Shown one piece after another: positions 1-40,135 of a DNA stretch of 64,000 nucleotides. Location: positions 1,240,001-1,304,000 of the forward strand of contig NW_025767401.1 of NCBI RefSeq assembly GCF_003918875.1. The letters are read 5' to 3'. Each line of letters starts with the position of its first letter. Position 1 is the stretch's first letter. The position numbers were made by a program, and so were the translations under genes. The stretch comes from Haliotis rubra (taxonomy: Eukaryota). Below the pieces are notes generated by a model. That model was not told where the DNA came from. It was given only the letters and a program-made list of their open reading frames with translations, and ran no database searches.

Positions 1-676
1 CCCTACACAGAAGACTTTGAAGGTAGATCTTATTTCTGTTATGTAACCATGGTAACTAACGACTTCATCTTGAACTATTAGTTGAATTTGGTTTCATTAA
101 CTGCAACTGGTTCATAACAAATTCGTGTCACAATTTCATGAATATTTCTGTTTCATATTTACATTTTGTATGGTAGCACAATGATACTTGTCACTCTCAG
201 TGAACCCTTTTATAAAGCATTGTAACAGTACAAAGACAGAATGTTCTAGCGAAGACTATTATAGTAAATGAAGAGTCGGATCTATAACTCAGGAAGCATT
301 ACCTTACACTGTCTAGTACTTGAAGTAATTTTATCACTTCTGTGTCTTTCGCGCTCACATGATCTTATTTTACATGGCATATTATCATTTTATAGATTCT
401 AGTGTTAAACTTCAGCTGAATCACAGCGGTTAAAACCTTTTTCTTCACTGTACCTTATGTTTGATAATGACTGGGGAATGGTTTCTTTGAACATCTGAGG
501 TGTGCTGCTGTTTGTTTACAGTGTTGTGTCCCTTTCATATGCCAGGATGAAATGATGATAGGTTGAATGCTAAGTTCAGCCTGTTTATGGCTGTTAGTTG
601 CTAACCACCATACCTGTGCCTGTAGGTTTCAGCAATGCTGTAAACACCTAGGACTGGCTTCACTCCTGGCTTTCCT

Positions 677-826
677 GGGCGGTGGGGTGGTCCAGTGGTT
701 AAAGTGTTCGCTGGTCACAATGAAAACACGGGTTCAATTCCCCACATGGGTACAGTGTGTGAAGCCCAGTTCTGGTGTCCCCGGCCATGATATTGCTGCT
801 CAAAGTGGCATGAAACAATACTCGCT
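677..826 (+). mobile_element. tRNA-derived SINE family 1
   Basis: A/B-box-like head GGTGGGGT.GCC.AGTGGTT...GGTTCRATTCCC; shared body CACATGGGTACA.TGTGTGAAGCCC. Confidence 0.85.
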
Positions 827-1104
827 ATTTCTACTTTCCTCCTGCCTAGCTGACTGAGATACTGTTCCAAGCGGCGTAAATCCCACCTCGCTTACTGGTG
901 AATACTCCTGTCCAGTGTTGAAGGTGCTGTCCCTGTCCTGATCCTGAATTTTAACCTGCATGCTATGTGTGCTTTGATATGCATGCTTAAATTGTCTTCC
1001 TTACAGCTTCCAAAATAATTCCCCATTGCCATTGTGTCTCATTGAGTGTGCCATACACCGGTTTACATGTGAACCCCTCTTCTACTCTTCCTACTATTGT
1101 TTAG

Positions 1105-1279
1105 GCTATGAGATCTTTATGGAGCCTTACGACCTTGCTCAGCAAATGGGGGTGTTTGAGGTTGCACAGGATGATGCCTCCAACAAGGTGATGAGGCAGA
1201 AAGTGTTAGCTCAGCCTGTGGTGTGGTGTCAAGCTGAGAGCCTGAAGATATCACTAAATGTCATTGGCTCTCACAACTG
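1105..1279 (+). CDS. GALC: GALC copy A exon 14a (alternative), 175 nt
   Basis: ttag|GC...TG|gtaag; YEIFMEPYDLAQQMGVFEV...MRQKVLAQPVVWC...VIGSHNW; phase 1 to phase 2. Confidence 0.88.
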
Positions 1280-1314
1280 GTAAGAAGGATACAGTGCCAG
1301 GCTCTCTTCAGCAA

Positions 1315-2432
1315 CCAGGGTGTTCATGACAATCTGTAGCCAGGGTGTTCATGACAATCTGTAGCCAGGGTGTCCATGACAATCTGTAGCCAGTGTGTTC
1401 ATGACAATCTGTAGCCAGGGTGTTCACAGCAATCTGTAGACAGGGTGTTCACGACAATCTGTAGCCAGGGTGTTCATGAGAATATGTAGCCAGGGTTTTC
1501 ACAACAATCTGTAGCCAGGGTGTTCATGACAATCTGTAGCCAGGGTGTTCATGAAAATATGTAGCCAGGGTGTTCACAACAATCTGTAGCCAGGGTGTTA
1601 ATGACAATCTGTAGACAGGGTGTTCACAACTGTCTGTAGACAGTCTTCACAACAATCTGTAGACAGGGTGTTTACAACAATCTGTAGCCAGGGTGTTCAT
1701 GAGAATATGTAGCCAGGGTGTTCACAACTGCCTGTAGCCAGGGTGTTCATGAGAATATGTAGACAAGGTGTTCACAACAATTTGTAGACAGGGTGTTCAC
1801 ATCAATCTGTAGCCAGGGTGTTCATGACAATCTGTAGAGAGTGTGTTCACGACAGTTGGTAGACAGGGTGTTCACGACGGTTGGTAGACAGGGTCTTCAC
1901 AACAATCTGTAGACAGGGTGTTCACAACAATCTGTAGACAGGGTGTTCACAACAATCTGTAGACAGGGTGTTCACAACAATCTGTAGACAGGGTGTTTCC
2001 AACAATCTGTAGACAGGTTGTTCACGACAGTTGGTAGACAAGGTGTTCACATCAATCTGTAGACAGGGTGTTCACAGCAATATGTAGACAGCGTGTTCAC
2101 ATCAATCTGTAGCCAGGGTCTTCACAACAATCTGTAGACAGGGTGTTCACAACAATCTGTAGACAGGGTGTTTCCAACAATTTGTAGACAGGGTGATCAC
2201 GACAGTTGGTAGACAAGGTGTTCACATCAATCTGTAGCCAGGGTGTTCACAACAATTTGTAGACAGGGTGTTTCCAAACAATTTGTAGACAGGGTGTTTC
2301 AAACAATTTGTAGACAGGGTGATCACGACAGTTGGTAGACAAGGTGTTCACATCAATCTGTAGCCAGGGTGTTCACAACAATTTGTAGACAGGGTCTTCA
2401 CAACAATCTGTAGACAGGCTGTTCACAACAAT
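1315..2432. repeat. Minisatellite, 25-bp unit, ~45 copies, in the intron between exons 14a and 14b
   Basis: Unit TGTTCA(T/C)(G/A)ACAATCTGTAG(C/A)CAGGG. Confidence 0.95.
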
Positions 2433-3873
2433 CAACAACCATGACAATAAACTGGTGTTTACAAGAATTTGTGCATAATATGTAGTGTGTTTAATGCTTA
2501 CTGAATTGTGATTATTTTGATACTAGTGAAATTTGCATGGAAAATAAACAGAACTTGACCTTCTGTTTTGTGGAATTCGTATTATGTTTTGAGAATTTGA
2601 TCAACTTGTTACTGATGTGTTGTTACTGATGCACCTGTTGAGTCTGTTGTATGAGGGGAGATGTACAAGGACCAGAGCATGCATGACAAGCTCTGTTGTT
2701 CTGAAGTTCAGAAACAGATAAAGGACCCATAGCTCAACAATCCTATTGCAATGCATGCTGACAAATGTCATTTGAATGCTGTATTTATTTACTGAGCCAG
2801 TTATCTAAGTAAGTCAGCTTCTGTTAGTATACATTTACCTCCTATTATGAGGATTTTCAGAATAAAATATGAACTGAATTTATTTGTTTCAATAAATGAC
2901 ATACAGTAAAGGCAACTAAACAGCATATTTTGTGCTTAAATATGATCCAGGGAAATTCAGGCAGGAACATTTTATGTGTGCTTCATTTAATTTGCATGTA
3001 AGGCAATGTCTGTATCAAACGTCGTCCAGAGAGTTCATTTCTGAATATGCCATGCTTTTCAACAGTAATAGGCACTTGTCTCTTCCACAATTGTCACATG
3101 TCTCTGTTGATTTGCATGATTTCATTTCGCTGACTAATGTTAACAGTTTGATTCATGTTAGTTTCACAGTATGACCTTAACCTCCATGTCACCTTTGCTT
3201 TCACACTCCGGCACAGCGATGACTAACATAACATCACTGCCACAGGCTAATTTGCATATCACGTGACCGGACTTTTCTCTTGTTTGTAAACAAACGCGCA
3301 TATTCATAAGAAGAAGAGACTGGACACATGAAAGCTTTTCGGCGCTCTCTTCATAATGTTTTACATTGTTACATATATATTCTTCCACAACTGCGACAGT
3401 TAGGTCTATGACAGTACATATTTAGATATCAAACTGGCTGCATCGTTTGCTCTCCATCAGCTTTGATGACAGCACGTGGAGCCGTATAACCTATGTAAAC
3501 AAAGGATCGCTTCGCAAATCGAAATAGTGTTACACGTTTTTTTATATTTTCTCAGTGAAACTAAACTATTCTATTAAAGATGTTTAATTAGATGTGTAGA
3601 CTCGTCAAAAATAAAAGAGTAAAAGAAATCTGTACATTATATTGAATGGACATTGCAAGATGTGACAAATCGTCACATTTTTCTGGCCTGTGGCAGAGGT
3701 ACTATGCTGGCTTGCCACACAGAACTCTGGGTAAGAGAGTGCTTTGCTTTGTACCCTGTTCTACTACTGATGCTTGACAAGCAACCATTGTGCTCTCACA
3801 GAAGTTGATGTACACACACTGTTCTTCAATACAACTTCACCTGTCAGACCTCACACCCTTCGTACAAAGATTA

Positions 3874-4062
3874 GGGGAGGTGGGGTAGCCTTGTGGTTTA
3901 AGCTTTGCTCGTCAAGTGGAAGACTCAGGTTGGATTCCCCACACAGGTACAATCTGTGAAGCCCATTTCTGGTGTTCGCTGCAATGATATTGCTGAATTA
4001 TTGCTAAAAGCGGAGTAAAACCTCACTCACTCACTCACTCACTCACTCACTCACTCACACTC
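3874..4062 (+). mobile_element. tRNA-derived SINE family 1 with (ACTC)n tail
   Basis: Same consensus. Confidence 0.88.
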
Positions 4063-4208
4063 ATGACCATTATGTTTCGGCATGCTGACACAAAACAATC
4101 TTAGCGTAAGGTGACCCTAAGTACTATCCTTCACTGTAGGGTTATGATGATTGTGGCAGTAAGATTGTCCTACCTGATGGTAAGTGCGATGTCTGTTTGT
4201 CTCCCCAG

Positions 4209-4386
4209 CATACCGCGAGCAGGAAGAACCCTTCAACCTGGTACCACAAGTCGGGTGCTTTGAAGTCCACAATACCTCTGACCCTACCCACCGTCAAGTG
4301 ATGAGACAAGTCGTACTCTCCGCACCCATTGAATGGTGCCCCATAAACCTAGACTTTCCCATTACCATAGGGGGGAACTCCAACTG
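4209..4386 (+). CDS. GALC: GALC copy A exon 14b (alternative), 178 nt
   Basis: ccccag|CA...TG|gtgcgt; YREQEEPFNLVPQVGCFEVHNTSDPTHRQVMRQVVLSAPIEWC...GGNSNW; phase 1 to phase 2. Confidence 0.88.
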
Positions 4387-4612
4387 GTGCGTGCATGTTT
4401 TTACAGTATGTGTGAAAGTGAAGGGATATTCTTGAGCAAGATGTATTTTCTTACTATGGCAGTTACTCTACGGCAGTTCTAACTGAAGGAAGTATCTGTA
4501 GTAGGACTAATTCTGTGACTGTGACTGCACACTGGGAGAGTTGAAAATGACTAGATGAACTGACATAGGAGTTGGCCTGAGTGTGAAGGTTGAACACTTG
4601 TGAGGTTGAACC

Positions 4613-5148
4613 CGTTCTCTTCCCACAGAGGTTACTTGTCATACCTTCCTACGAACCTCTGTTCTAATACAGCCCTTTTGTGGTGCGAGTGTTCAGGATT
4701 CATGATTGGTTGCAATCAGATTTAGTTGTGCAATCAGCGACATTTCAAAAGTGATCATTCGCAAGGGCTCGGTTTTTTCCTTATGGTTCAGGAAAACTTG
4801 AACCTCGTCCCCTGCGAGATGCGTGAACATTTCTTCTAGACGGAACTCAGTCACGTAATAGCGGATCAATGGCGTCTCTATCGCCCTCGTTGACAACGGT
4901 CAAGCTAGCCATTAAATGTCTTGTGTGTCAAATCAACACAAGTCCCCGACAGGGGAGGGATATTTGGATCTTAGTCAAGTTGGATCTAAGTCAATGTATT
5001 ACGTGTTCAGATTGGATAGAAAGAAGGGAGATACTTCATGTTGTGATTTTTTGCCGCTAGGGGATTTTACGAGTACCGGAAAATATGGCCATATTAGAAC
5101 AGAGGTTCGTAGGGAGATATGACAAGTAACCTCTGTGGGAAGAGCATG
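4613..5148. mobile_element. MITE with ~60-bp TIRs and 9-bp TSD (MULE-like by TSD length), copy 1
   Basis: TIR C(A/G)TTCTCTTCCCACAGAGGTTACTTGTCA...; TSD GGTTGAACC at 4604-4612 and 5149-5157. Confidence 0.9.
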
Positions 5149-5758
5149 GGTTGAACCATACAGTTTAACATCAATCAAGTGGTATCATGCCTATCATAAC
5201 ATACCTTACTAACTGTAGCTATGTACCCCACCATGATAGCACTGCAGTACCGATAAAGACAGCATGAAACCATATCTACTCACTCACTACAGCTCTGGAT
5301 CATGCCATGGTTGTTGGAGAATACCATCTTTCTGTTGAATGGACATGCTCACAGGAATAGCCTGTCTGTACGTAACACGTCTGCACGTAACCTGTTTCAT
5401 TCACATAGTTCTAAGTGCAAGAAAAAGTATATGAAATATGTACTGAACCTTTTTGTCACTAAGCTCCCCTCACCATCTTTCCTCCCCAACCACCCAGCCA
5501 CCCAACACTCAGGTAAATGTTTTAAGGTTCCACCCAGCCACCCAACACTCAGGTAAATGTTTTAAGGTTGTGCTGGAATTTACCTACCAGCACACTATGT
5601 ACTTGAAATCATTAAGTGGCTGGGAGATAGCAGCCGATGGAAATATATGTGACACAATAATTGTAATGTCAAGGGTCAACGTCATCTCCAAGATCATGGA
5701 TTGAAAAACCTACAATTACTCAAAAGAATTGCTGTACATGACTTGTCAGATCATTGGT

Positions 5759-6248
5759 CATGAGTGAGATAAGCTACGTATCTGGGTAAAACACTTATAT
5801 AAAATTTCCAATTACGCATTGAAAAATAATTGTTGCGTACCAATTACGCATTAAAAATGTTAGATACGCAAATAGTTTAAAACAAATGCGTACGGAATAT
5901 ATTTATAAAAATTGCTTGCGTAATGAAAAAGACATCGATTGCTATCAAGTTGAACTGTTAGTATAGGACAAGTGTTGTACTGTCAGTATAGGATGAGTGA
6001 TTTTTTATGAAATCATTTCCATTATATTTAAGTTGGTTTTCATTAGGTATGAGATAAGGCAGAACATACCTGCTTAGTAAACTTACTCAGTCACATAATA
6101 CTTAGGTGAGTAAAATGACTGAAATACGCACATATTTGAAGCAGTGGGTAACGGAAAATGAAATACCCACTCAACATTCATAAAACCCACTCCAAAAAAA
6201 TACAGTGGGTACAGTACCCACATGAGGTAAATCTTATCTGGAGCTCTG
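5759..6248. mobile_element. Possible decayed hAT-like element
   Basis: Ends CTTATCTGGAGCTCTG, weak match at the left end, many TACGCA/TACCCA subterminal motifs; no clear TSD. Confidence 0.35.
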
Positions 6249-6539
6249 TATCATCAAGGTGGAGAACTGAGATTGTAAGGTTTCTGAAGAGGGTCATTGT
6301 GGTTTGAAAAATCTTGCCAGGTTGCTTGTCGAACTGAAAACATTTTGTGTCAGATCAACCTTTTTCATTATATCAAACTATAGACGAAACGCTTACAATG
6401 CCAGTTACAGCTGTCGCCCTGCAGTGTTTTGTGATTGACATTTACTGCGTAAATTCCTTTTTTGTACTGACTTAATGTCATTTGGTTTGGTGCATAGTTT
6501 TATTTTGTTTGAGTGGCATTCTAGAAGTTGGTGGTATAG

Positions 6540-6707
6540 AGATGACAAAACTTTATAGATTATCAACTTCTTTATTTTGACAATGGCGATGTTTCGGTAT
6601 AGATTCTTATACCGTTATACATATGCTTGAACACAGCATATGAATCTATACCAAAACGTCGCCATTGTCAAAATAAAGAAGTTGATCATCCATAAAGTTT
6701 GTCATCT
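6540..6707. mobile_element. Long inverted repeat resembling a Penelope-like element terminus
   Basis: ~70-bp arms containing stem-GAAAC(G/A)TCG...AATAAA; direct repeat TGCATAGTTTTATTT at 6491 and 6707. Confidence 0.5.
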
Positions 6708-7745
6708 GCATAGTTTTATTTGATGTTTGTCATTGAGATGCTTGGAAACGTCTCTTTTAAGAAGTCTGAATACAATATACAATATAGTGAATGCCTTGTC
6801 TGTCCTTTCATAATCATTTCATCGGAGCATACGTAAAAAGGCAATCAATATTTTTCAACAGAAATTGGTTGATACATCAGGGAAAACCTAAAGTGGTTTT
6901 ACGATTGTCATTTATTTTGGTATTTTATTTTTTTCGATTTCCATGGGAACAATTTGGACTTGGTCTCAAAAAGGGGTGCATTTTGTTTCCAGAGATCAAC
7001 TGGAAAACCATCAAAGATTTTTCATCCAAACCTTGCACATGTATTAACCAAGGGTGGAAGTGGTGCCTTTTTTCCTTTGACATTGATATTTGTGTGTACC
7101 TGACATAAGAAATACAAAGTTACGAATCCCATTTCATAGTTATTGTTTTGACAGCTCAATATCTTCTCTTGTATACAGGCGGACAGATTAGAAAGAAATT
7201 TTATCATCAACTTAGACTTTAAGTAACTGTCAGACGATTTATTCTTTCAAATCTTTTGGGGCCGAAGGGATTTGTCATCTATTGATCACTCTTGTAGTTT
7301 AACAGTTGTGGAGGTAGCACTATGTTTTATCTATTCTTAGGCCGAACATTTATTGTTGCATGTCACTGGTTGCTGAAGTGAATCTGCAGTATGTGTACAT
7401 GTTTTGTCATTTATCTAGATGTGCCAGTATTTAATTAAGTTTCAACTGAAATGAGTATGTAGATGTCTAATATTTCACATGAAACCAGTGATTTAGATAG
7501 TAAGATTTAGTTTGTGCATTGTGAACCTAAAGAAAGGGAAGAAAAGCTTTGCCTTAAATTACATTATTGTGATATCATTCAAAAATATAAATCTTTTAAC
7601 GTCACACTGATGAAAAAGCATGTTCTATTCAGATGGTTATCAATAAGGGAGCAGACCTGTTATCTTCTGTATTTTCCTGAACATTTACATGTGAAGGTCA
7701 TTTGACAATTAAAACTCTCCAAAAGTGCTTTGAGTTTTATAGTTA

Positions 7746-8014
7746 GGGATCGCTCATAATTTATGGCTAGGGGGTGATGATGATTTGGGGGGCAGGGGGT
7801 TCCACCCATTTTTGTTCGAGCTAGGGGTCAGTAATTTTGTACATAAAAATATGTTTAAAATTATGCTTAAAAATTATGGGAAGGGGGGGTCATTGATTTT
7901 GTACATGACATGCAGGGGGTACTTATTTTATACATAAATTGTAGGGGGTCATTCAAATTGTACATGCTCTTCTTTTTTTTTCCCCCACCCCAGGCATGAA
8001 TTATGAACGGTCCC
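7746..8014. mobile_element. PIF/Harbinger-type MITE
   Basis: Imperfect ~30-bp TIR beginning GGGA, TTA TSDs. Confidence 0.75.
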
Positions 8015-8195
8015 TTAGTAAGAATTTTTTCATTTGAATGTGAATATTGCTATTTTGCTAATAGTTCCCTTCCATTATTTCATTTGATTATGCTATGTGG
8101 ATATATATAGTTCAGGTATGTTTATGAAGTTACTTGATGTAAGTAAACTGATGCTTCACACCATGTCATGTGGGTATTGATGATGGTCTCTGCAG

Positions 8196-8365
8196 GACTG
8201 ACATCTATGCTGAGGTTGACGTCAAACTGGGCGAGGTCAATGGAACCAACGGCGTGTTCGTAGCTGCCCGAGTGGACCAGGGAGGCTGTAATGCCTTCTC
8301 CTCCACAGGAATATTCCTGTATATCTTCCCCAAAAAAAACAACTACATTTTGGCCAATAACCTAG
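8196..8365 (+). CDS. GALC: GALC copy A exon 15, 170 nt
   Basis: tgcag|G...G|gtgag; TDIYAEVDVKLGEVNGTNGVFVAARVDQGGC...ILANNL; same length as exon 15 of B and C. Confidence 0.93.
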
Positions 8366-8559
8366 GTGAGTTCATGGCCAAGATTCCCCGTCTCTTTACT
8401 CTGTCTGGATCATGAGCTTTGTATGTAACGAGTAACTCAAGTTTGTTAATAAGATGGGGTTAATTGTAATCCAGTGTAGCAATCTGTATACTGGCTGGTT
8501 GTGTAACATCGGTCCCATTGAGCAGGGATTGTTTTTCATGGTATCAACCATTGGTTGGA

Positions 8560-8788
8560 CTCCTTCAGACTCAGCCATATTCCAGCTATATGATGGCAGT
8601 CTGTAAACAATCGAGACTGGACTAGGCAATCCGGTGATCAACAGCATGAGCATCGATCTACGCAATTGGGAACCATAGACATATGTCAACCAAGTCAGCA
8701 AGCCTGACAACCCTATCCTGTTAGTCGCCTCTTACGACAAGCATGGCTTAGCGAAAGCCAATATTCTAACCCGGATCTTTACTGGTCC
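8560..8788 (-). mobile_element. SINE family 2 (Meta-domain-like core)
   Basis: CATGCTTGTCGTAAGAGGCGACTAA core; GCTGGAATAT tail. Confidence 0.8.
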
Positions 8789-9046
8789 ATTAGGAACATT
8801 GTCGCATATTACACACTGCTGATGCTGATGAAAGAAATGTCAAAATATTCTTCGTAAATATATCATCAATGCTCATTAGAAATACTACATACAAACATAT
8901 TTATCAACTACAAAGGAATTAGTGCAATAACGTACTGACATTATGATTTTATAACATGTTTTCCTTTGCTTGTTATGTGAATAGATGTTTAAAAAGAATT
9001 TTTAACACTATCATTTTCACTCATTTCTATTACTTCCCGACTGCAG

Positions 9047-9144
9047 GTCGAACATCGGTCATCACCAGCGGTCAGCTGGGCGAGGTGGAGTCCAGCTGGA
9101 ACAAGGTGTCACTCATGGTCAAGGATGCGTCACTCATGGTCAAG
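9047..9144 (+). CDS. GALC: GALC copy A exon 16, 98 nt
   Basis: ctgcag|GT...AAG|gtatgt; RTSVITSGQLGEVESSWNKVSLMVKDASLMVK. Confidence 0.85.
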
Positions 9145-9228
9145 GTATGTCACTCTGATGTTCACTGTACTGTGTGGCAGCTGTGTGTCCTGTCACACAT
9201 ACCCTGGTTTATATGTACTGTATTCCCA

Positions 9229-9397
9229 GGGCGATGGGGTAGCCTAGTGGTTAAAGCATTCACTCGTCATGCTGAAGGCCTGGGTTTGATTCCCCACATG
9301 GGTACAAGTGTGAAGCTCCTTTATGGGGTCCCCCACTGTGATTTTGCTGGAATATTGCTAAATGCGGCGTAAAACTAAACTCACTCACTCACTCACT
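9229..9397 (+). mobile_element. tRNA-derived SINE family 1
   Basis: Same consensus, (ACTC)n tail. Confidence 0.88.
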
Positions 9398-9794
9398 GTA
9401 TCCCCACACGATCTCAGTAAACTGTAGATTCATGATGCTGAAATGTTTTATATGTATGCCTTGCGTGACCCACAGTCTAAATATTTAGATCATCTAAAGA
9501 TGAAAAGTCCTCATTTTTCACTCCTTCCACTGTATAGTGGTGTCGCTAAACAACTACAAGAAGTAGAGAGTAAAACAAGTGGGCATTCCTCACAGGAGTG
9601 TCAATTAAACAGTCAGCATGTGTAGAAATCTGTTGATTAATTTGAAAATTGTCATTAACAAGGGGTGATATAGATTCAGGATTGGGGCACATCATGTGAT
9701 TTGACTGAACAGACAAATTAGGAGAGTTTCGATTGTATGGAGTACAAATAGCGAGGATTGCTAATGGTCCTGAGTCATGCCTTCCTTTACTGCT

Positions 9795-10521
9795 GGGGGC
9801 GGTGGGGTAGCCTTGTGGTTAAAGCATTGGCTCGTCACACCGAAAACCCGGGTTCGAATCCCCACATGGGTACAATCATTCTCTTCCCACAGAGGTTACT
9901 TGTCAAATCTTCCTACGAACCTCTGTTCTAATACGGCCATATTTCCCGGTTCTCGTAAAATCCCCTAGCGGCAAAAAATCGCAATATGAATTATCTCCTT
10001 CTTTCTATCCAATCAGAACATGTGTTACATCGACTTAGATCCGACTTGACTAATGCAAGTAAAAATGGGGCCACAAATATCCCTCCTCTGCCGGGGACTT
10101 GTGTTAATGTGACACACAAGACATTTAATGGCCAGCTTGTCCGTTGTCAACGAGGGCGATGGAGACGCCATGTGATCCAGCATTACATTACTGAGTTCTG
10201 TCTAGAAGAAACATTTGCGCATCTCGCAGGCGAAGAGATTCTAGTTTTCCAGAAGCTTACGGAAATTACCAAGGACTTGGGAATGATCACTTTTGTCGCT
10301 GATTGCACAACTAAATCTGATTGCAACCAATCACGAATCCTGAACACTCGCACCATGAAAGGGCCGTATTAGAACAGAGGTTCGTAGGAAGATTTGACAA
10401 GTAACCTCTGTGGGAAGAGAATGGGGTACAATGTGTGAAGCCCATTTCTGGTGTCCCCCACCGTGATGTTGCTGGAATATTGCTAAAAGCGGCGTAAAAC
10501 CAAACTCAGACAGTCAGTCAG
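9795..10521 (+). mobile_element. tRNA-derived SINE family 1 split by a MITE (9795-9876 and 10424-10521)
   Basis: The two halves rejoin to the consensus after removing the MITE and one TSD. Confidence 0.9.
9877..10423. mobile_element. Same MITE family, copy 2, opposite orientation, inserted in a SINE
   Basis: Perfect long TIRs; TSD GGGTACAAT at 9868-9876 and 10424-10432. Confidence 0.93.
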
Positions 10522-10613
10522 TCCTTTACTGCTTGTTGCCTAGTAACCTTCACAATGCTGCGGAACTTAGATAATCCACATGGACTCATTAAAATGTCAT
10601 TTTTTGTTTCCAG

Positions 10614-10829
10614 GGCACAGTTGCTGTTGGAATGTTGAATGGGAAAACCCTGTTTAACCACACTGTACCCAGCAAACCTGCAAGTGGATTTGTCGGACTC
10701 GGAACCGATTCTTGGGGCATCGCCGACTTTGACAATCTCAAAATAACATCTGCAGAGGATCAACTGCATCATTTACACCATGTGAAAAAAGAGGATGCAA
10801 AGTTATATTTTGTCCCTGGGGCTCACTGA
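10614..10829 (+). CDS. GALC: GALC copy A exon 17 (last coding exon)
   Basis: tttccag|GGC; GTVAVGMLNGK...SGFVGLGTDSWGIADFDNLKITS...GAH-stop. Confidence 0.93.
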   Translation, partial: GTVAVGMLNGKTLFNHTVPSKPASGFVGLGTDSWGIADFDNLKITSAEDQLHHLHHVKKEDAKLYFVPGAH

Positions 10830-10941
10830 TGGCACTTACATATAGCTGTACATAAGAGTTGATTCACGGAATGAAATGATTATCAAAATGAGGGCAACAA
10901 CTTTTTCTAAGTATGTATTTTTTTATGGGTGTGAGCCTTAA

Positions 10942-11251
10942 GGCCAAATAATGAAAATGTTGTTCTGATTACACATCTTTAAAATTTAGGGTAGGTAGGA
11001 TTTGGGGTTTTTTAACATTTTTTTTTTAAAGTAAAGTACAAACTAATAACACATTTATCAATGTGTAATTGTTATTCAATCAAGCTTTCAGCCTTCATGT
11101 TGATTTTCTCGGTCAGAATGACTGATGTTCGTCGGTATCGGGATAAAACAATGGTATCAGAATGCTTATTCATACCACTTTAAAAAATAGGGTCGGCACC
11201 AGAATTAACGGTTGGTCAGGTAATCGGAACCACAACATTTATATTAAGGCC
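10942..11251. mobile_element. PIF/Harbinger-type MITE just 3' of the copy A stop codon
   Basis: GGCC...AAATGTTG...GATTAC imperfect TIRs, TAA TSDs. Confidence 0.7.
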
Positions 11252-13172
11252 TAACTAGTATAACTGATGGGGATGTATTGAGAACATCAGAAGCTGACTT
11301 TGGTTTTCATTGTCATAACTTTCAATAGCATTTTCTGATCATTGCATAAATATATGGGCTGGTTGACAAAATCAAATATCGGTAGTATTGTAAATGGGAA
11401 GAATTATTAAAGATTATCAATATCTTGCATCAGTTCTCATTATGAAAGTTGTGCCATGGGTAATATCTTATGTGAACCATTGTGATTAAATCAAGTTTCA
11501 ATTTACTAGAACGGATTTGTGCCAAAACCGGAATGCAATCCGTTAAATACATTTTACAGACAAAATACACAACTTGTTTGTACATGTACTTAGTAACCTT
11601 GCAGAAACCATCAACAAACTTTTTGGAGATGGGTTTTACATTTTTGTTCAGTGTTATTTCACCTAGATTTATAGATAATTGATGTCTTGGATCCATATTG
11701 ATAGCCAGCCCTAATAAATGTGCATTTTCATTATGACAAGAAGCATGATGCCTGTTGAGCAATATCTCATCACATGTCTTTTCTTGATGAAATACTCCTT
11801 GCACTGATCTTACCTATATTCATGAATTACTTAAGGATGTCTGGGATTGTGAGTTTGTATGTAGTACTATGTACCCCACAGACTTGACTTGTGTATCCAG
11901 ACATGTCACATGTCATAGTTTATGCCAGTATATGGTGACTGACATTAATAGTTCATGCATTTTTGTCACAGACATGTATCAGGTTGATGTCTATGATGCC
12001 AAGGCTGTCAGTATTCTTTGGGGCCAAAACTAAGTATAAACACCAACACAGGCTCGGGTGTTGCTAGTATTTTGGGTGAAGCAAAAATATGACATTATTT
12101 ACTGTTCTTCAGAAATGTCACAAGTATGCCAAATCGATTTTGATAATTTAAGACACCTGTTGCTAGAAACTTGGCCTGTTTCATTTGTTTCATTTACCAT
12201 GCCTCTCAGCTTAGCCACGCTATGGCTAAGTGAACTACCGGTACATCGCTGTAATACGTATACCTATATACTTGTGTGTAACCAGGGGTCGCTGGCCCAC
12301 AACTGTACTGAAATAAAGAAATGAGCCAAATCTGTTGTTGATTGGTCAAATACACCTGATGGGCATGGTTACAGCATAAAAAGCATCTGAAATCACAAAT
12401 GCTGATATTACAATGGTTTTCTCACACACAAACTGGGGAATAATCGTAACAACCATGGTACAGGTAGTCAGTTGGTGTGTCATTCAGGAGAAAAAAGTAA
12501 AGGAGCTACTTGATTTGCTGTTAAATTATCAGTACTTTCAAAATTCTTATGTGACACATATTCAAGGTGTATTTGTTTTCTAGCATACAAAAACATTCCA
12601 TCTGTTTCATATCACATTTGAACATTCTAGTGGGTGTATATGAAGCATGTTTATCTGTTTATAGCTTGTCTGTATGAGACTGTTTATAGTTTGGAGTTTG
12701 TGAATGTAATACATGTATAACCATTGTACAGAATTCAAATCTGCGATATTATATCATGTGAATTTGTGCCTGCTAAGACCTGAGTTGTCACAACATGGTT
12801 GACACACACAAAAGCATTCAATTAACATGGATCAGTGGAAATAAATCTGAAATTATTTTTGTACATATATGCATTTTGTTAAAGAAGGATAAACCACATG
12901 TGATGGTTATACTAACAGCATATTGTATGCATTTGTTATTATTTTTTTGTTACACACATGTCCTTAAATTGATTTTCTTCTTACCCAAATAAAGAATAAT
13001 TTACTCTAAGAAGTGAGATTATGTTTTTTATCATGCGATGCTGAGCCAGAACAAACTGAATTTTTTTTTCTGGTTGGAGAAGAAAGTGGTAGTGATGTGA
13101 GTGGGATGTATCGGATGTTCCGGTGACAGCAGTAACAGAACCTAGCACCTGGTCGCTGTCCCAATACATCAT

Positions 13173-17666: not shown

Positions 17667-17847
17667 CAACTATAATCACCAATAACAGCGAAGCTCCTGT
17701 TCAGCATCTTGTCAGCAAGGTTGTGGCACCAAAACAAGGGCTGCTGTAGAACCATCTGACGCACAAACTTGTTGTTGTCCTCCGCCAGAATCTCAAAGGA
17801 GCCGGTTTGCTGGGCGAGATTAAAAGGCTCCGTGGAAACTTCGTATC
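17667..17847 (-). CDS. GALC: GALC copy B exon 14
   Basis: aag|GYEVSTEPFNLAQQTGSFEI...RQMVLQQPLFWC...VIGDYSW|gtaag, 181 nt. Confidence 0.92.
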
Positions 17848-18057
17848 CTTTTACAACAAAAATAAATAACAGGCAAGAATAATTTAGCATAAAAAATACA
17901 GATACGTTTCAACCAATGGACTTTAATATCAAAGCAAGAGTATTTCTTTGTTGTACGTCATGTTAATATTCCAGATTAAACCTAGTGGTACTAGAAACTG
18001 GAATAATGCCCATGGTTCAATGTGGTTAATGCAATACTCCACGCCAGGACAGACCTG

Positions 18058-21000
18058 TACATCACCGCTTCTAGACATCCCGGGTCTAATCACTAGACTA
18101 CATCTCTGCTCCTAGACATCCCGGGTCTAATCACTACGCTACATCACTGCTCCTCAACATCCCAGGTCTAATCACTATGCTACATTACCGATCCTAGACA
18201 TCCAGGGTCTAATCACTACACTGCATCACTCTTCCTCGACATCCCAGGTCTAATCAGTACGTTACATCATAGCTCCTGGACATCCCAGGTATAATCACTA
18301 CGCTTCATCACTGTTCCTCAACATCACAGGTTTAATCACTATGCTACATCACTGTTCCTAGACATCCCAGGTTTAATCAGTACGCTACATCACTCTTCCT
18401 CGACATCCCGGGCTATATCACTGCTCCTAGACATCCAGGCTCCAATCACTATGCTACATCACTGCTCCTAGACATCCCAGGTCTAATCACTATGCTACAT
18501 TACTGCTCCTAGACATCCCAGTTCTAATCACTACACTACATCATTGCTCCGAGACATCCTGGGTCTAATCACTATGCTACATTACCGCTCCTAGACATCC
18601 CAGTTCTAATCACTACACTACATCATCGCTCCGAGACATCCAGGGTCTACTCACTAAGCTACATCACCGTTCCTAGACATCCCAGGTATAATCACTACGC
18701 TATATCACCGCTCCTAGACATCCCAGGTCTAATCTCTACGCTACATCACCGCTCCTAGACATCCCGGGTCTAATCACTACGCTACATCACTGCTCCTAGA
18801 CATCCCGGGTCTAATCACAGCATTACATCACCGTTCCTAGACATCCCGGGTCTAACCACTAGATAACATCACTGCTCCTAGACATCCCAGGTCTAATCAC
18901 TACGCTACATCACTGCTCCTAGACATCCCAGGCCTAATCACTAAACTCCTACACTGCTCCTACTACGTTACACATCCCAGACATCCCAGGTCTAATCACT
19001 AGACTACATCACTGCTCCTAGACATCCCAGGTCTAATCACTATCCTACATCACCGCTCCTAGACATCCAGGGTCAGGTCTACATCCCAGGTCTACTGCTA
19101 CATCACTGCTCCTAGACATCCAGGTCTAATCACTATGCTACATACTGCTCCTAGACATCCCAGGCTAATCTAAAATCACTATGCTACATTACTGCTCCTA
19201 GACATTCTGGGTCTAATCACTATACTACATCATCGCTCCTAGACATCCCAGGTCCAATCACTGAACTACATCACTGCTCCTAGACATCCTGAGTTCCAAT
19301 CACTAGATTACATCATCGCTCCTAGACATCCCGAGTCTAATCACTAGATTACATCACTGCACCTAGACATCCCAGGGTCCAATCACTAGATTGCATCACC
19401 CCTCCTAGACATTCCAGGTCTGATCACTACGCTACATCACTCTTTCCTCGACATCCGGCTCTAATCACTATGCTACATCACTGCTCCTAGATACAATCAC
19501 TACGCTACATCACTGCTCTAGACATCCTGGCTCCACTACTACCCTACACCACTCGCTCCTCAACATCCCAGGTTTAATCACTAGACTACATCACCGCTCC
19601 TAGACATCCTGGTCTAATCACTACTTCCTACACCATCTGCTTCTAGACATCCCAGGTCTAATCACTAGATTACATCATCGCACTTAGACATCCCAGGTCT
19701 GATCACTACGCTACATCACTGTTCCCAGACATCCCAGGTCTAATCACTATGCTACATCACCACTCCTAGACATTCCAGGTCTAATCACTATACTCTATCA
19801 TCTGCTCCTAGACATCCCAGGTCTAATCACTACGCTACATCAACGCTCCTAGACATCCCAGGTCTAATCACTGCACTACATCACTGCTTCTAGACATCCC
19901 GGGTCTAATCACTACGCTACATCACTGCATCTTAGACATCACTACAACATCTGAATCACTACAGGCTACATCACCGCTCTCTCCTAGACATCCCAGGTCC
20001 AATCACTACGCTACATCACTGATCCTAGATATCCCAGTTCTAACTCACTACACTACATCACTGCTCCTAGACATCCGGGTCTAATCACTATGCTACATCA
20101 TCGCTTCTAGACATCCTCGGTCTAATCACTACGCTACATCACTGCTCCTAGACATCCCAGGTCTAACCACTGCACTACATCACTGCTCCTCAGCCATCCC
20201 AGCTCAAATCACTATGCTACATCACTGCTCCTAGACATCCCAGGTCTAATCACTACGCGACGTCATTGCTCCTAGACATCCCAGGTCTAAACACTGTGCT
20301 ACATCACCACTCCTAGATATTCCAGGCCTAATCACTACGCTCTATCACTGCTCCTAGACATCCAGGGTCTAATCACTACGCTTAGCATCACTGCTCCTAG
20401 ACATCCCAGGTCTAGTCACTGCACCACATCACTGTTCCTAGACATACCGGGTCTAATCACTATGTTACATCACTGCTCCTAGACATCCAGGCCTAATCAC
20501 TACCCTACATCACTGCTCCTCAACATCCCAGGCCTAATCACTAGACTACATCACTGCTCCTAAACATCCCAGGTCTAATCACTAGACCACATCACCGCTC
20601 CTAGACATCCCAGGTCTAAACACTGTGCTACATCACCGCTCCTAGACATTCCAGGCCTAATCACTACGCTATATCACTGCTCCTAGACATCCCGGGTCTA
20701 ATCACTACGCTACATCACCGCTCCTAGACATCCCAGGTCTAATCACTGCACTACATCATAACTCCTCAACATCCCAGGTCTAATCACTACGCAACATCAC
20801 TGCTCGTAGAAATCCCAAGTCTAATCATTATGCTACATTACCGATCCTAGATATCCCAGTTCTACTCACTACACTACATCATCGCTCCTAGACATCCCAG
20901 GTCTAATCACTATGCTACATCATCGCTTCTACACATCCTCGGTCTAATCACTACGCTATATCACCGCTCCTAGACATCCCAGGTCTAACCACTGCACTAC

Positions 21001-24000
21001 ATCATTGCTCCCACATATCCCAGCTCAAATCACTATGCTACATTACCGCTCCTAGACATTCCAGGTCTAATCACTGCACTACGTCATTGCTCCTCGACAT
21101 CCCAGGTCTAAACACTGTGCTACATCACCGCTCCTAGACATCCCAGGTCTAATCACTATGCTACATTACCGCTCCTAGACATCCCAGGTCTAATCAGTAC
21201 ACTACATCATCGGTCCTCGACATCCCAGGCTCTAATCACTACGCTACATCACTGCTCCTAGACATCCTGGGTCTACTCACTAAGCTTACATCACCGCTCC
21301 TAGACATCCAGGGGTCTAATCACTACGCTACATCACCGCTCCTAGACATCCAGGGTCTAATCACTGCATTACATCACCGTTGCTAGACATACCGGGTCTA
21401 ATCACTACGCTATATCACCGCTCCTAGACATCCCAGGTCTAATCTCTACGCTACATCACCGCTCCTAGACATCCAGGGTCTAATCACTACGCTATATCAC
21501 CGCTCCTAGACATCCCAGGTCTGATCACTACGCTACATCACTGTTCCTAGACATCCCGGGTCTAATTACTATGTTACATCACTGCTCCTAGACATCCCGT
21601 GTCTAATCACTACCCTACATCACTGCTCCTCAACATCCCAGGCCTAATCACTAAACTACATAACCGCTCCTCGACATCCCAGGTCTAATCACTAGACCAC
21701 ATCACCGCTCCTAGACATCCCAGGTCTAAACACTGTGCTACATCACCGCTCCTAGACATCCAGGGTCTAATCACTACGCTATATCACCGCTCCTAGACAT
21801 CCCAGGTCTGATCACTACGCTACATCACTGTTCCTAGACATCCCAGGTCTAATCACTATGCTACGTTACTGCTCCTAGACATTCCAGGTCTAATCACTAT
21901 ACTACATCATCGCTCCTCGACATCCCAGGTCTAATCACTGAACTACATCACCGCTCCTAGACATCCCGAGTCTAATCACTAGATTACATCATCGCTCCTA
22001 GACATCCCGAGTCTAATCACTAGATTACATCATCGCACCTAGACATCCCAGGTCTAATCACTAGATTGCATCACCCCTCCTAGACATTCCAGGTCTGATC
22101 ACTACGCTACATCACTCTTCCTCGACATCCCGGGTCTAATCACTATGTTACATCACTGCTCCTAGATATCCCGGGTCTAATCACTACGCTACATCACTGC
22201 TCCTAGACATCCCGGGTCTAATCACTACCCTACACCACTGCTCCTCAACATCCCAGGTTTAATCACTAGACTACATCACCGCTCCTAGACATCCCGGGTC
22301 TAATCACTACCCTACACCACTGCTCCTCAACATCCCAGGTTTAATCACTAGACTACATCACTGCTCCTAGACATCCCAGGTCTAATCACTACGCGAGGAC
22401 ATCACTGCTCCCTAGACATCCCAGGTCATTCTAAACACTGTGCTACATCACCACTCCTAGACATTCAAGGCCTAATCACTACGCTCTATCACTGCTCCTA
22501 GACATCCCGGGTCTAATCACTACGCTACATCACCGCTCCTAGACATCCCAGGTCTAATCACTGCACTACATCACTGCTCCTAGACATCCCGGGTCTAATC
22601 ACTACGCTATATCACTCCTCCTAGACATCCCAGGTCTGATCACTACGCTACATCACTGTTCCTAGGCATCCCGGGTCTAATCACTATGTTACATCACTGC
22701 TCCTAGATATCCCGGGTCTAATCACTATGCTACATCACCGCTCCTAGACATCCCGGGTCTAATCACTACCCTACACCACTGCTCCTCAACATCCCAGGTC
22801 TAATCACTAGACTACATCACCGCTCCTCGACATCCCAGGTCTAATCACTAGACTACATCACCGCTCCTAGACATCCCAGGTCTAATCACTACGCGACATC
22901 ACCGCTCCTAGACATCCCAGGTCTAAACACTGTGCTACATCACCACTCCTAGATATTCCAGGCCTAATCACTACCCTCTATCACTGCTCCTAGACATCCC
23001 GGGTCTAATCACTACGCTACATCACTGCTCCTAAACATCCCGGGTCTAATCACTACGCTACATCACTGCTCCTAGACATACCGGGTCTAATCACTATGCT
23101 ACATCACCGCTCCTAGACATCCCAGGTCTAATCACTATGCTAAGTTACTGCTCCTAGACATTCCAGGTCTAATCACTATACTACATCATCGCTCCTCGAC
23201 ATCCCAGGTCTAATCACTGAACTACATCACCGCTCCTAGACATCCCGAGTCTAATCACTAGATTACATCATCGCTCCTAGACATCCCGAGTCTAATCACT
23301 AGATTACATCATCGTACCTAGACATCCCAGGTCTAATCACTAGATTGCATCACCGCTCCTACACATTCCAGGTCTGATCACTACGCTACATCACTCTTCC
23401 TCGACATCCCGGGTCTAATCACTATGTTACATCACTGCTCCTAGATATCCCGGGTCTAATCACTACGCTACATCACTGCTCCTAGACATCCCGGGTCTAA
23501 TCACTACCCTACACCACTGCTCCTCAACATCCCAGGTTTAATCACTAGACTACATCACCGCTCCTAGACATCCCGGGTCTAATCACTACCCTACACCACT
23601 GCTCCTCAACATCCCAGGTTTAATCACTAGACTACATCACCGCTCCTAGACATCCCAGGTCTAATCACTACGCGACATCACCGCTCCTAGACATCCCAGG
23701 TCTAAACACTGTGCTACATCACCACTCCTAGACATTCCAGGCCTAATCACTACGCTCTATCACTGCTCCTAGACATCCCGTGTCTAATCACTACGCTACA
23801 TCACCGCTCCTAGACATCCCTGGTCTAATCACTGCACTACATCACTGCTCCTAGACATCCCGGGTCTAATCACTATGCTACATCACCGCTCCTAGACATC
23901 CCAGATCTAATTACTACACTACATCACCGATCCTAGACATCCCGGGTCTAATCACTACGCTATATCACTGCTCCTAGACATCCCAGGTCTGATCACTACG

Positions 24001-29022: not shown

Positions 29023-29159
29023 AACATCACAACCCTTAAAGTCCAAGGTCAAGTTGCAACTCTACATGAACGCTGTATATAACACGGGTCTTATCACTAC
29101 TCTACATCACCGTTCCTTAACATCCGAGATCAAATGACTAGGATCCTTCAAATGCATTC

Positions 29160-31890: not shown

Positions 31891-31935
31891 TAGACCGCTA
31901 AGTAATATGGTTGCCCTGTGTCATCCGTGACGCAC

Positions 31936-34133: not shown

Positions 34134-34273
34134 CATAGTCTCAATGACGATAGCGTGGTGCTTCTTGTCCAGACTGATGAAACCGACGTAGCTTCCGCCA
34201 GATTGCAAATGGCCGACACCGTGGTCATGGCTAAGGTAGTACCAGCCTATCTCCGTGAACTGTGTGGNNNNNN
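34134..34273 (-). CDS. GALC: GALC copy B exon 10 (acceptor and first ~6 nt fall in the N gap; start inferred from copy C)
   Basis: [44 protein letters not shown]|gt; copy C exon is 140 nt. Confidence 0.85.
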
Positions 34274-34427
34274 NNNNNNNNNNNNNNNNNNNNNNNNNNN
34301 NNNNNNNNNNNNNNNNNNNNNNNNNNNNNNNNNNNNNNNNNNNNNNNNNNNNNNNNNNNNNNNNNNNNNNNNNNNNNNNNNNNNNNNNNNNNNNNNNNNN
34401 NNNNNNNNNNNNNNNNNNNNNNNNNNN
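34268..34427. other. Assembly gap, 160 N
   Basis: Run of N. Confidence 1.
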
Positions 34428-39388: not shown

Positions 39389-39757
39389 AGGTTTCTGTCG
39401 AGCCCAGTGGATACCTCTCTACTCAGCGATTTGCGGCGCTTGAAACGTCAGGGCGATCAACACGCAAATGCACATGCACGCGCACGCAATGTGGCTTGCA
39501 CATACACCACGTGCATTCACATTGGCAAGTGGATTCCTTTCTTATTATCAGCTCTAATTCTACTCCAGTCGTCTAAGGCACCTCAATTGGTGTTGCAGGG
39601 TTGAGATCTTCAGGCGTTCCAGGATCCTAGCATCGTGGGTTTAAATCCAATATTCACCCTGATTAAAGTCAATAGTTTGACAAGACTATGAACATGCTCC
39701 GGGGAGGGCATAGAAAATAGATGGACACAGACAATAGATGCATGAGGACAAACCAAC

Positions 39758-39894
39758 CCTATGTAATCTATCGAAGCAGACAGATCCTTGTCCTTTAAGA
39801 TGTCATCGGCGATGGCCCAAGGGTCTGTGTAGTCGTCGGCTGCTACTATTCTGACGTTGCTCAGGTTGTTGCTGTCCAATGTCTTCCTCAGCGT
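39758..39894 (-). CDS. GALC: GALC copy B exon 6
   Basis: aag|TLRKTLDSNNLSNVRIVAADDYTDPWAIADDILKDKDLSASIDYIG|gt, 137 nt. Confidence 0.92.
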
Positions 39895-40135
39895 CTTCAA
39901 GACAGGACACATACTTACAAGCAAGAGGGACCAATGTATGGGAATACAGTAGGTTCTCTGTTTCCCAAATAATAAGCATAGAGTTATAAGAATCTTTGTG
40001 GTGTGAAACTCCAGACAATTATAGCTCTGCAGATTTGTTTAGTCTCTGAAATGGAAAAGGGTATCTCTATTTTTTAAATATTTTATTAATATGATACAGA
40101 AATATTTGTTTTCTGTAAAATATGTTCATTTCAGA

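Follow-up and report, generated by a model that had tools for sequence, protein, structure and literature searches.

A galactocerebrosidase-like gene with a conserved tandem pair of homologous, very probably mutually exclusive exons in the abalone Haliotis rubra

Exons IIIb and IIIc of FGFR2 are tandem-duplicated and mutually exclusive, and double inclusion or skipping shifts the reading frame. The pair of exons described here resembles IIIb and IIIc: adjacent homologous exons of 3n+1 length with the same phases, apparently one per mRNA, encode a ligand-facing segment. The two systems differ in that FGFR2 is a receptor and the gene studied here encodes a lysosomal GH59 glycosidase, for which nonsense-mediated decay of misspliced transcripts is presumed.

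A second related system is COQ-2, in which a mutually exclusive switch between exons 6a and 6e is found in helminths, annelids and molluscs, with both forms abundant; exon deletion showed the consequence for ubiquinone versus rhodoquinone [PMC7434440]. As in COQ-2, the pair described here is an exclusive exon pair in molluscs and other lophotrochozoans that would remodel a region around an enzyme active site. The genes are unrelated, and an effect of the GALC pair is a prediction, where that in COQ-2 was demonstrated by exon deletion. Mutually exclusive splicing can also be under the control of RNA structure, with a docking site and selector sequences [PMC6071210].

We found two intact versions of exon 14, 14a and 14b, in a galactocerebrosidase (GALC)-like gene of H. 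rubra, copy A. The DNA analyzed was a stretch of 64,000 nt (the window). GALC-like paralogues are numerous in molluscs, and three (copies A, B and C) lie within the window, which carries only the 3' part of copy A. Coordinates of the features are listed in Table 1.

Table 1. Features of copy A and exon-14-like pieces of its paralogues, in window coordinates.
Feature	Position	Strand	Description
Exon 13 tail, GALC-like copy A	1-22	+	Final 22 nt, ..PYTEDFE plus 1 base; donor GT at 23-24
Exon 14a, a-type	1105-1279	+	175 nt; phase 1 in, 2 out; RefSeq isoform X2, XP_046548414.1
Arm 1, candidate RNA duplex	1298-1318	+	+19 to +39 after the 14a donor; complementary to 7366-7386
Minisatellite	1316-2433	+	25-nt unit, 44.8 copies; begins 37 nt past the 14a donor
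CCTGATGGTAAGTG	4173-4186	+	Second-longest three-species invariant intronic run; 23-36 nt before the 14b acceptor
Exon 14b, b-type	4209-4386	+	178 nt; phases as 14a; RefSeq isoform X1, XP_046548413.1
Arm 2, candidate RNA duplex	7364-7388 (core 7366-7386)	+	Lies 803 nt ahead of exon 15
Exon 15, constitutive	8196-8365	+	Starts G/ACTGAC.., encoding (W)TDIYAE; 100% identical to P0151
Exon 16	9047-9144	+	In-frame 21-nt tandem duplication (DASLMVK) in the window
Final coding exon, copy A	10614-10829	+	Stop TGA at 10827-10829; 100% identical to P0151
Exon-14-like piece of paralogue	17667-17847	-	tblastn
Exon-14-like piece of paralogue	55728-55908	-	tblastn

Both versions of exon 14 have a stop-free translation between AG and GT splice sites (..tttag/GC to CTG/gtaaga for 14a; ..cccag/CA to CTG/gtgcgt for 14b). 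The translation of 14a is 100% identical to the H. rubra X2 protein (P0151), that of 14b matches protein P0254, and the exon 13 tail upstream of both matches ..LPYTEDFE of XP_046548413 and XP_046548414. The proteins encoded by 14a and 14b are 39% identical (22/56 residues), and each aligns to the same stretch of mouse GALC, approximately residues 468-526 of the 3zr5/4ccc chain, with weak scores when the exons are aligned singly (E of 0.13-0.2). Across the 64 kb, a tblastn search matched exon 14 at four places only: 14a, 14b and one site in each minus-strand paralogue. The span from 14a to exon 15 is 7,092 nt, and no match resembling exon 13 or exon 15 was found between 14a and 14b. Since each exon is 3n+1 in length, the frame is shifted if both or neither is used. 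Joined sequences with both or neither ran into early stops, and those with 14a alone or 14b alone were open into exon 15. These results agree with the initial annotation, which had described two homologous intact exons with canonical splice sites and equal phases, approximately 35-40% identical in protein, with no exon 13 or 15 between them and with a frameshift on inclusion of both or neither. It had not recorded the exon 13 tail at 1-22. Neither the RefSeq proteins nor other Haliotis have the DASLMVK duplication of exon 16.

RNA evidence indicated that exon 13 is joined to either version. We mapped assembler contigs from four H. rubra runs (X1-X4), labelled "RNA?" because their type is a guess, to positions 1-6000 of the window. 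GT..AG joints from 22 to 1105 and from 22 to 4209 were present in all four runs. The initial annotation had named these joints as a check of its proposal and the failure of one exon to be spliced in as evidence against it; both exons were joined to exon 13. The joint from exon 13 to 14a also rules out that 14a is part of a separate truncated gene. Exon 14a was covered by a 229-nt contig over 1103-1280 (depth 7.1, 10.3, 14.2 and 12.9 in runs X1 to X4), and 14b by a 232-nt contig over 4207-4387 (depth 15.6, 11.6, 11.9 and 14.5). Depths of the two exons were thus similar in each run, with 14a making up 31% to 54%, and the depth of unique intron sequence was zero in the four runs. No joint from 14a to 14b (1279 to 4209), and none from exon 13 straight to exon 15 (22 to 8196), was present among the contigs of these runs, which, being assembled contigs and not reads, could miss rare forms with both exons or neither.

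The downstream junctions could be approached through the lengths of these contigs. Each consisted of 30 nt upstream, the exon, and 24 nt downstream. The final 6 nt (CAACTG) are common to 14a and 14b, and 6 + 24 equals k-1, or 30. Equal overhangs of 24 nt, as in a de Bruijn bubble, indicate that the same sequence of at least 24 nt follows both exons. The RefSeq isoforms X1 and X2 of H. rubra differ solely at residues 478-535, after which both continue with WTDIYAE, the start of exon 15. The contig-length logic and these computational models together suggest that both 14a and 14b are joined to exon 15. A search for junction-spanning peptides with an exon-14 profile against a set of 5.8 billion proteins gave only one, unrelated, candidate. 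Database matches of approximately 76 amino acids, considered as possible RNA bubble contigs, turned out to be genomic open reading frames ending at TGG/TAA donors.

The same exon swap is annotated in other abalones (H. rufescens, H. cracherodii and H. asinina), in the gastropods Pomacea, Gigantopelta, Littorina, Babylonia and Physella, in the bivalves Crassostrea, Mizuhopecten, Mytilus and Mya, and in the brachiopod Lingula. More than 12 species of two phyla retain the pair, and its order, phases and splice sites are the same from abalones to bivalves and the brachiopod. Some genomic contigs could be linked to Pomacea because their b-type exon encodes a sequence identical to Pomacea X2; on these, a 187-nt a-type exon precedes the 178-nt b-type exon by 1.9 kb, and the two are each 3n+1 in length with AG/GT sites. 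In a tree of 13 pairs, every b-type exon fell on one side of a branch with support of 96/98, indicating that the duplication is older than the splits between gastropods, bivalves and brachiopods. The pair is not a feature of every GALC-like gene: a Candidula gene and copies B and C in the window have only the a-type, and a GALC-like gene of a metagenome eukaryote has only the b-type.

Both exons appear to be constrained. The ratio dN/dS was 0.10-0.17 for 14a (compared with H. rufescens), 0.10-0.22 for 14b and 0.17-0.18 for exon 15; a comparison of 14a between H. rubra and H. asinina gave a high value of 0.64, from 7 differences. Judged from these ratios, 14a and 14b are both under purifying selection. 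The possibility that one exon is not conserved in relatives and evolves with dN/dS near 1 is not what we found, as both are conserved with values of about 0.1-0.2. The RNA joints, the RefSeq isoforms, the conservation and the dN/dS values all favor the earlier proposal that exactly one exon is used. Based on these results, we consider that 14a and 14b are, with high probability, real, expressed and anciently conserved mutually exclusive exons of a GH59 GALC-like gene. Transcripts with both exons or neither would be removed by nonsense-mediated decay, and single-exon mRNAs alone would then accumulate.

By its sequence and predicted structure, copy A is a GH59 galactocerebrosidase-like gene whose product would have a TIM barrel, a beta-sandwich and a lectin domain. 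Precomputed domains for P0151 and its relatives are PF02057, PF17387 and PF21708 (Glyco_hydro_59, 59M and 59_C), and PF21708 is also assigned to exon-14 open reading frames of relatives. All of 83 sequences have E177 (IWNE) and E252 (SSED), which by their motifs correspond to mouse E182 and E258, the catalytic acid/base and nucleophile. AlphaFold models of both isoforms superimpose on 3zr5, 4ccc and 5nxb with a TM score of 0.95 (target-normalized) and an rmsd of 1.9-2.1 A; confidence in both models is lowest at the swapped loop (pLDDT 68-87). The product is 50% identical to mouse GALC and shares its three domains, the catalytic Glu pair and the pocket Trp. It differs from mouse GALC in that neither an a-type nor a b-type signature is clear in the mouse sequence. 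To our knowledge, vertebrate GALC has no alternative to exon 14.

The swapped segment covers residues with assigned roles in the mouse enzyme. Two of them, R520 and T523, form contacts with saposin A (SapA Q24), and a third, W524, lies in the lectin domain and shapes the pocket, as the initial annotation had said of the Trp in RPITW. Exon 14 spans the positions of all three. A Trp equivalent to W524 and the Cys that follows are retained in both types, and at the positions of mouse R520/T523, 14a has Q/V and 14b has A/E. The types differ most consistently in that the a-type has an N-x-S/T sequon 6-7 residues beyond the Trp and the b-type a WCP..FP loop. In H. rubra 14a this sequon is restored by an RNA allele, 1247 G>C. 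The NTS sequon and extra Cys that had been noted in 14b are both present in the sequence; they are specific to Haliotis and are not general b-type features.

The swap would thus exchange ~57 residues at the start of the lectin domain and keep the pocket Trp. It would alter the residues near the Trp that dock saposin A in mouse (R520 and T523). The loop past the Trp would change as well, with a glycosylation sequon in a-type proteins and a rigid WCP..FP element in b-type ones. Because the docking residues and the loop are changed and the Trp is kept, the difference between isoforms is expected at the rim of the pocket. We give roughly even odds to the view that the isoforms differ there in presentation of the lipid substrate or activator, and not in catalytic chemistry. 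The initial annotation had gone further, proposing two enzymes with different substrate pockets. The sequences may be read that way, but the changed residues fall as much on the saposin A docking loop and the glycosylation site as on the pocket, and retention of the pocket Trp and the following Cys in both exons does not indicate a changed sugar specificity.

Several other explanations can be considered. What the choice of exon affects might be mainly glycosylation, folding, trafficking or the way a saposin-like activator docks, rather than how the sugar pocket is shaped. The earlier idea of different substrate pockets would in that case be wrong in detail, with the splicing switch still real. 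The conserved Trp and Cys, the contrast between sequon and WCP..FP loop together with the allele that restores the sequon, and the differing SapA-contact positions all speak for this explanation, which we hold to be a serious possibility, if one with a little less than an even chance. The similar depth of the two exons in all four RNA samples would also be expected if 14a and 14b were functionally equivalent and either could be picked with no isoform-specific function. However, each type has held on to its signature from gastropods to bivalves and the brachiopod, b-type exons cluster with one another across species and not with their own a-type, and both exons are under purifying selection; were one copy redundant, it should have decayed or vanished, as in the single-exon paralogues. 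Equivalence is therefore improbable. Finally, one exon might be absent from productive mRNA: it could be a pseudo-exon, belong to a distinct truncated gene copy, or stem from genomic DNA in the libraries. The incomplete gene in the window and the guessed run type leave some room for this, but GT..AG joints lead from a single exon 13 to both exons at zero unique intron depth, and both are intact, conserved and in annotated isoforms of more than 12 species. We give it almost no credence.

How the choice might be made is suggested by a candidate long-range RNA duplex that would pair the intron just past 14a with a site ahead of exon 15. In three Haliotis species, its two arms are mutual best partners over the whole interval, with predicted energies of -27.9, -36.9 and -36.3 kcal/mol in H. 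rubra, H. rufescens and H. asinina, respectively (computed from 21-30-nt windows, as long-window duplexfold energies were uninformative). The pairing in H. rubra has two mismatches. Arm 1 has the same position in H. rufescens and H. asinina, and its substitutions there give G.U pairs. Arm 2, in a block that is merely 67-77% identical, contains the longest run invariant among the three species in three introns (25 columns). Since arm 2 does not vary, there is no compensatory double change; the changes in arm 1 are one-sided and compatible with G.U pairing. These single-base differences in arm 1 also account for the result of a strict screen, which found no exactly conserved reverse-complementary 9-mers. 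In the partial Pomacea contigs, the best duplex was -27.1 kcal/mol, versus a background of -25.1 kcal/mol. No Rfam family matched positions 1-11000 of the window. The minisatellite that begins near arm 1 is also an array in H. asinina and is a single copy in H. rufescens.

The duplex would loop out 14b and favor mRNA containing 14a; without it, 14b would be used. As in docking-site and selector systems, distant conserved complementary intronic elements are involved, one of which adjoins an alternative exon. In contrast to those systems, the sole selector-like arm follows 14a and no competing arm accompanies 14b: we found no conserved partner for arm 2 near 14b. A single arm of this kind points to a candidate simple loop-out stem and not to selector competition. 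That a conserved 21-bp duplex sets exon choice is a tentative proposal, somewhat short of an even chance. Alternatively, protein regulators might set the choice, either of the Rbfox type at UGCAUG or acting on the element before 14b, with the complementarity a by-product of an inverted duplication. TGCATG occurs 9 times in 8.4 kb, versus approximately 2 expected, including at 957 and 980 (before 14a), 4392 (6 nt past the 14b donor) and 7357 (adjoining arm 2), and the reverse-complement similarity of the arms extends, with gaps, to approximately 45 nt, as it would after a duplication. On the other hand, the TGCATG sites are conserved only in part, among the three Haliotis species, and both the 25-nt invariance of arm 2 and the G.U-preserving changes in arm 1 would fit a role in pairing. 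We regard control by proteins with an incidental duplex as rather unlikely. CCTGATGGTAAGTG, before 14b, may serve as a branch point (CTGAT) or as a decoy resembling a 5' splice site.

The initial annotation had known of no such splicing switch described for GH59 enzymes. In the literature we found no paper describing the two GALC isoforms; the isoforms themselves are already in the automatic RefSeq annotation. New here is the conserved 21-bp duplex, which could loop out 14b. On a broader and more speculative reading, which we think is probably not correct as a whole, lophotrochozoan GALC would have ancient combinatorial swap-exons (exon 14 and, in several species, an exon 6 cluster past the acid/base Glu), exon 14 would toggle between a glycosylated and a proline-braced loop, altering substrate or activator, and the Haliotis stem would set the choice. 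No second copy of exon 6 was found in copies B or C of the window.

Krabbe disease is a deficiency of GALC, whose lectin-domain loop from R520 to W524 is the site of saposin A docking and pocket closure. Since two versions of this segment have been kept for a very long time, their conserved differences would mark positions that tune how GH59 enzymes handle substrate and activator. Our findings add a deeply conserved mutually exclusive pair that would remodel an enzyme in molluscs and brachiopods, with a candidate RNA-structure mechanism. In analyses of molluscan GALC-like genes, with their many paralogues and possibly digestive roles, X1 and X2 would best be treated as distinct enzymes.

Three GALC-like (GH59 galactocerebrosidase-like) genes lie in the window: the 3' end of copy A (plus strand), all of copy B and most of copy C (both minus strand). 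We found that copy A contains two homologous versions of exon 14, 14a and 14b (see table). Their peptides are 39% identical (22/56) and match the same region of mouse galactocerebrosidase (3zr5/4ccc chain residues ~468-526), weakly when the isolated 57-aa segments are used as queries (E-values 0.13-0.2). Exactly four exon-14-like pieces were found in the window by tblastn: 14a, 14b and a single piece in each of copies B and C. Between 14a and 14b there was no match to exon 13 or exon 15. In silico, transcripts built from exon 13, one exon 14 (14a or 14b) and exon 15 stayed open throughout; those with both exons 14, or with neither, met stop codons. The initial annotation had described two intact exon-14 versions, no exon 13 or 15 between them, and a frame shift if both or neither were used. 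Its description of the pair was correct in every checkable detail (splice sites, translations, tblastn, joining), and the other two points were borne out.

Features of copies A, B and C by window position
Feature	Position	Strand	Description
Exon 14a	1105-1279	+	175 nt, intact open segment, AG/GT bounded
Exon 14b	4209-4386	+	178 nt, intact open segment, AG/GT bounded
Copy A exon 15	8196-8365	+
Copy A exon 16	9047-9144	+
Copy A last exon	10614-10829	+
Arm 1	1298-1318	+	21 nt, +19 to +39 past 14a donor, complementary to arm 2
Arm 2	7366-7386	+	803 nt upstream of exon 15
CCTGATGGTAAGTG	4173-4186		23-36 nt upstream of 14b acceptor
Minisatellite	1316-2433		25-nt unit (CAGGGTGTTCACAACAATCTGTAGA), 44.8 copies, begins 37 nt past 14a donor
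Interspersed element	601-800, 3801-4000		in both introns
Exon 16 duplication	9103-9144		21 nt, in-frame, tandem (..VSLMVKDASLMVK)
GC-skewed stretch	17848-31935		intron preceding exon 14 of copy B
Run of N	34268-34427		160 N, inside copy B
Exon 6, copies B and C	39745-39900, 60240-60395		81% identical

Both exons are expressed. We mapped Logan contigs from four runs of the same organism (RNA by a guessed label) on window positions 1-6000. Exon 14a was covered by one 229-nt contig in each run (depth 7.1, 10.3, 14.2 and 12.9) and 14b by one 232-nt contig in each (15.6, 11.6, 11.9 and 14.5); unique intron depth was zero. The share of 14a was 31-54% across the four samples. GT..AG joints 22->1105 and 22->4209 were present in 4/4 runs. 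The first 22 nt of the window are therefore the 3' end of exon 13, which splices to either exon. No 14a-to-14b joint (1279->4209) was listed among the contig joints of these runs. Each contig consisted of 30 nt upstream, the exon and 24 nt downstream. Both exons end in CAACTG; these 6 nt plus 24 make 30, equal to k-1 in a 31-mer graph, as would be seen where two paths merge again into one downstream sequence. From these lengths we infer that 14a and 14b run on into the same sequence.

At window position 1247, C replaced G in all four runs, so that residue 47 of exon 14a becomes Asn in place of Lys and the N-I-S sequon of other abalones is regained. The other differences from the window (1172, 1244 and 4279) were synonymous. 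Summed contig depth was very high (about 9,000-12,600) over 601-800 and 3801-4000, which were also joined to one another in contigs. These segments are an interspersed element, highly expressed or highly repeated, with no Rfam match.

Homologues were retrieved with a profile of four exon-14 peptides, then with a full-length gastropod match as query. A protein annotated as galactocerebrosidase-like isoform X2 [Haliotis rubra] matched 14a, exon 15 and the last exon at 100% identity, which identifies the window as H. rubra DNA. Its 90% cluster includes XP_046548414.1 (X2, 689 aa) and XP_046548413.1 (X1, 690 aa), which differ solely at residues 478-535 (14a in X2, 14b in X1) and both go on into WTDIYAE of exon 15. 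Both isoforms are therefore already in the automatic RefSeq annotation.

The same swap was found in RefSeq isoform pairs from other abalones (Haliotis rufescens, H. cracherodii, H. asinina), other gastropods (Pomacea canaliculata, Gigantopelta aegis, Littorina saxatilis, with three versions of the block, Babylonia areolata, Physella acuta), bivalves (Crassostrea gigas, Mizuhopecten yessoensis, Mytilus galloprovincialis, M. edulis, Mya arenaria) and the brachiopod Lingula anatina. The block also differs between Aplysia californica X1 and X2, which were not counted as a-type (14a lineage) or b-type (14b lineage). On genomic contigs, a b-type exon (178 nt) that matches the Pomacea X2 protein without a difference is preceded, 1.9 kb upstream, by an a-type of 187 nt; both are 3n+1 long with AG/GT sites. 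Some paralogues have a single type: copies B and C and a Candidula gene are a-type, and a gene on a metagenome contig is b-type. A maximum-likelihood tree of exon peptides, coarse at 59 columns, placed the b-types of all 13 pairs on one side of a branch (support 96/98). If this tree holds, the duplication would predate the divergence of gastropods, bivalves and brachiopods.

Among the three Haliotis genomes, dN/dS was 0.10-0.17 for 14a, 0.10-0.22 for 14b and 0.17-0.18 for constitutive exon 15; one 14a comparison gave 0.64, resting on seven differences only. As grounds for abandoning the proposal, the initial annotation had named use of a single exon, a separate truncated gene as the source of 14a, or one exon lacking conservation in relatives with dN/dS near 1. 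The data bear out none of these: the joints to both exons, the isoform pairs and these ratios point the other way.

How exclusivity arises may involve frame and RNA structure. The frame arithmetic would render products with both or neither exon non-productive, and such transcripts would be cleared by NMD. In addition, arms 1 and 2 are candidate strands of a long-range intronic duplex. Pairing at the same two sites is also seen in H. rufescens and H. asinina. All three species share an identical arm 2, which lies in a 25-nt stretch, the longest without any difference among them in the three introns, which are otherwise 67-77% identical; single-base differences in arm 1 give G.U pairs, with two mismatches in H. 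rubra. Duplex energies were -27.9, -36.9 and -36.3 kcal/mol (H. rubra, H. rufescens, H. asinina), compared to about -8.5 for shuffled arms, and across the exon 13-exon 15 interval the best partner of each arm was the other arm in every species. There were no compensatory double changes between the arms in these species, and an old inverted duplication could also account for their similarity. On partial Pomacea contigs the pairing energy was -27.1 kcal/mol, with a background of -25.1. If the arms do pair, the stem would loop out 14b, bringing the 14a donor near exon 15. No second selector was found near 14b. CCTGATGGTAAGTG, invariant in the three species, combines CTGAT, which resembles a branch point, with GGTAAGT, which resembles a consensus 5' splice site; TGCATG motifs in copy A introns are conserved in part. 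The minisatellite is an array in H. asinina and a single copy in H. rufescens.

Other variation was seen in these genes. Several molluscan GALC-like genes have a second isoform-swap block (RefSeq) at residues ~193-234, in exon 6 directly after the acid/base Glu motif IWNE: Gigantopelta (P0266/P0145/P0265, three versions), Mercenaria (P0287/P0288), Ruditapes (P0292/P0200), Littorina (P0299/P0166) and Babylonia (P0153/P0302). No second exon-6-like piece was found in copy B or C. Neither the RefSeq proteins of H. rubra nor the DNA of H. rufescens and H. asinina has the exon 16 duplication, which may reflect a polymorphism, an assembly difference or odd donor site use. In copy B, the run of N adjoins the exon matching residues 333-412 of protein P0062, and the long stretch before exon 14 has strong GC skew (about -0.48). 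The 90% cluster of a Mytilus GALC-like protein (P0178) includes 197-aa 'exosome complex component CSL4-like' proteins and 866-927-aa M. coruscus 'GALC' models, likely from fused models of neighbouring genes.

The lectin-domain residue W524 of mouse GALC contributes to the shape of the pocket (PMC4445328), and R520 and T523 form hydrogen bonds with saposin A Gln24 (PMC5764952). These residues belong to the RPITW motif, whose counterparts in the alignments are QPVVW (14a) and APIEW (14b). The Trp and next Cys are retained in both types (83 sequences). Across phyla, a-types read WC-x-A-[E/D]-x-x-N-x-[S/T], an N-glycosylation sequon 6-7 residues past the Trp, and b-types WCP-x-x-L-x-FP (second Pro in 13/13), with RQVV where a-types have RQM/T/KV. 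The NTS sequon and extra Cys ascribed to 14b are present but Haliotis-specific. AlphaFold models of the two isoforms (mean pLDDT 86.5 and 88.0) superposed on mouse GALC (TM 0.95, rmsd about 2 A). In the loop past the Trp, their lowest-confidence part, the model of the 14a form has a short helix where that of the 14b form has coil. We infer that the switch leaves the catalytic centre as it is and acts on the rim of the pocket, a glycan site and the surface where the activator docks. Two different substrate pockets, as initially proposed, may result; saposin docking or glycosylation is at least as likely a target.

Full-text literature searches found no paper linking GALC to mutually exclusive exons; this kind of system is already known, and this instance, annotated automatically in RefSeq, has no published description that we found. 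The two exon 13 joints, X1 and X2, the cross-phylum pairs and the frame test support the proposed splicing: 14a and 14b are a real pair of alternative exons in a GH59 enzyme, both expressed, of ancient conservation and very probably used in a mutually exclusive way.
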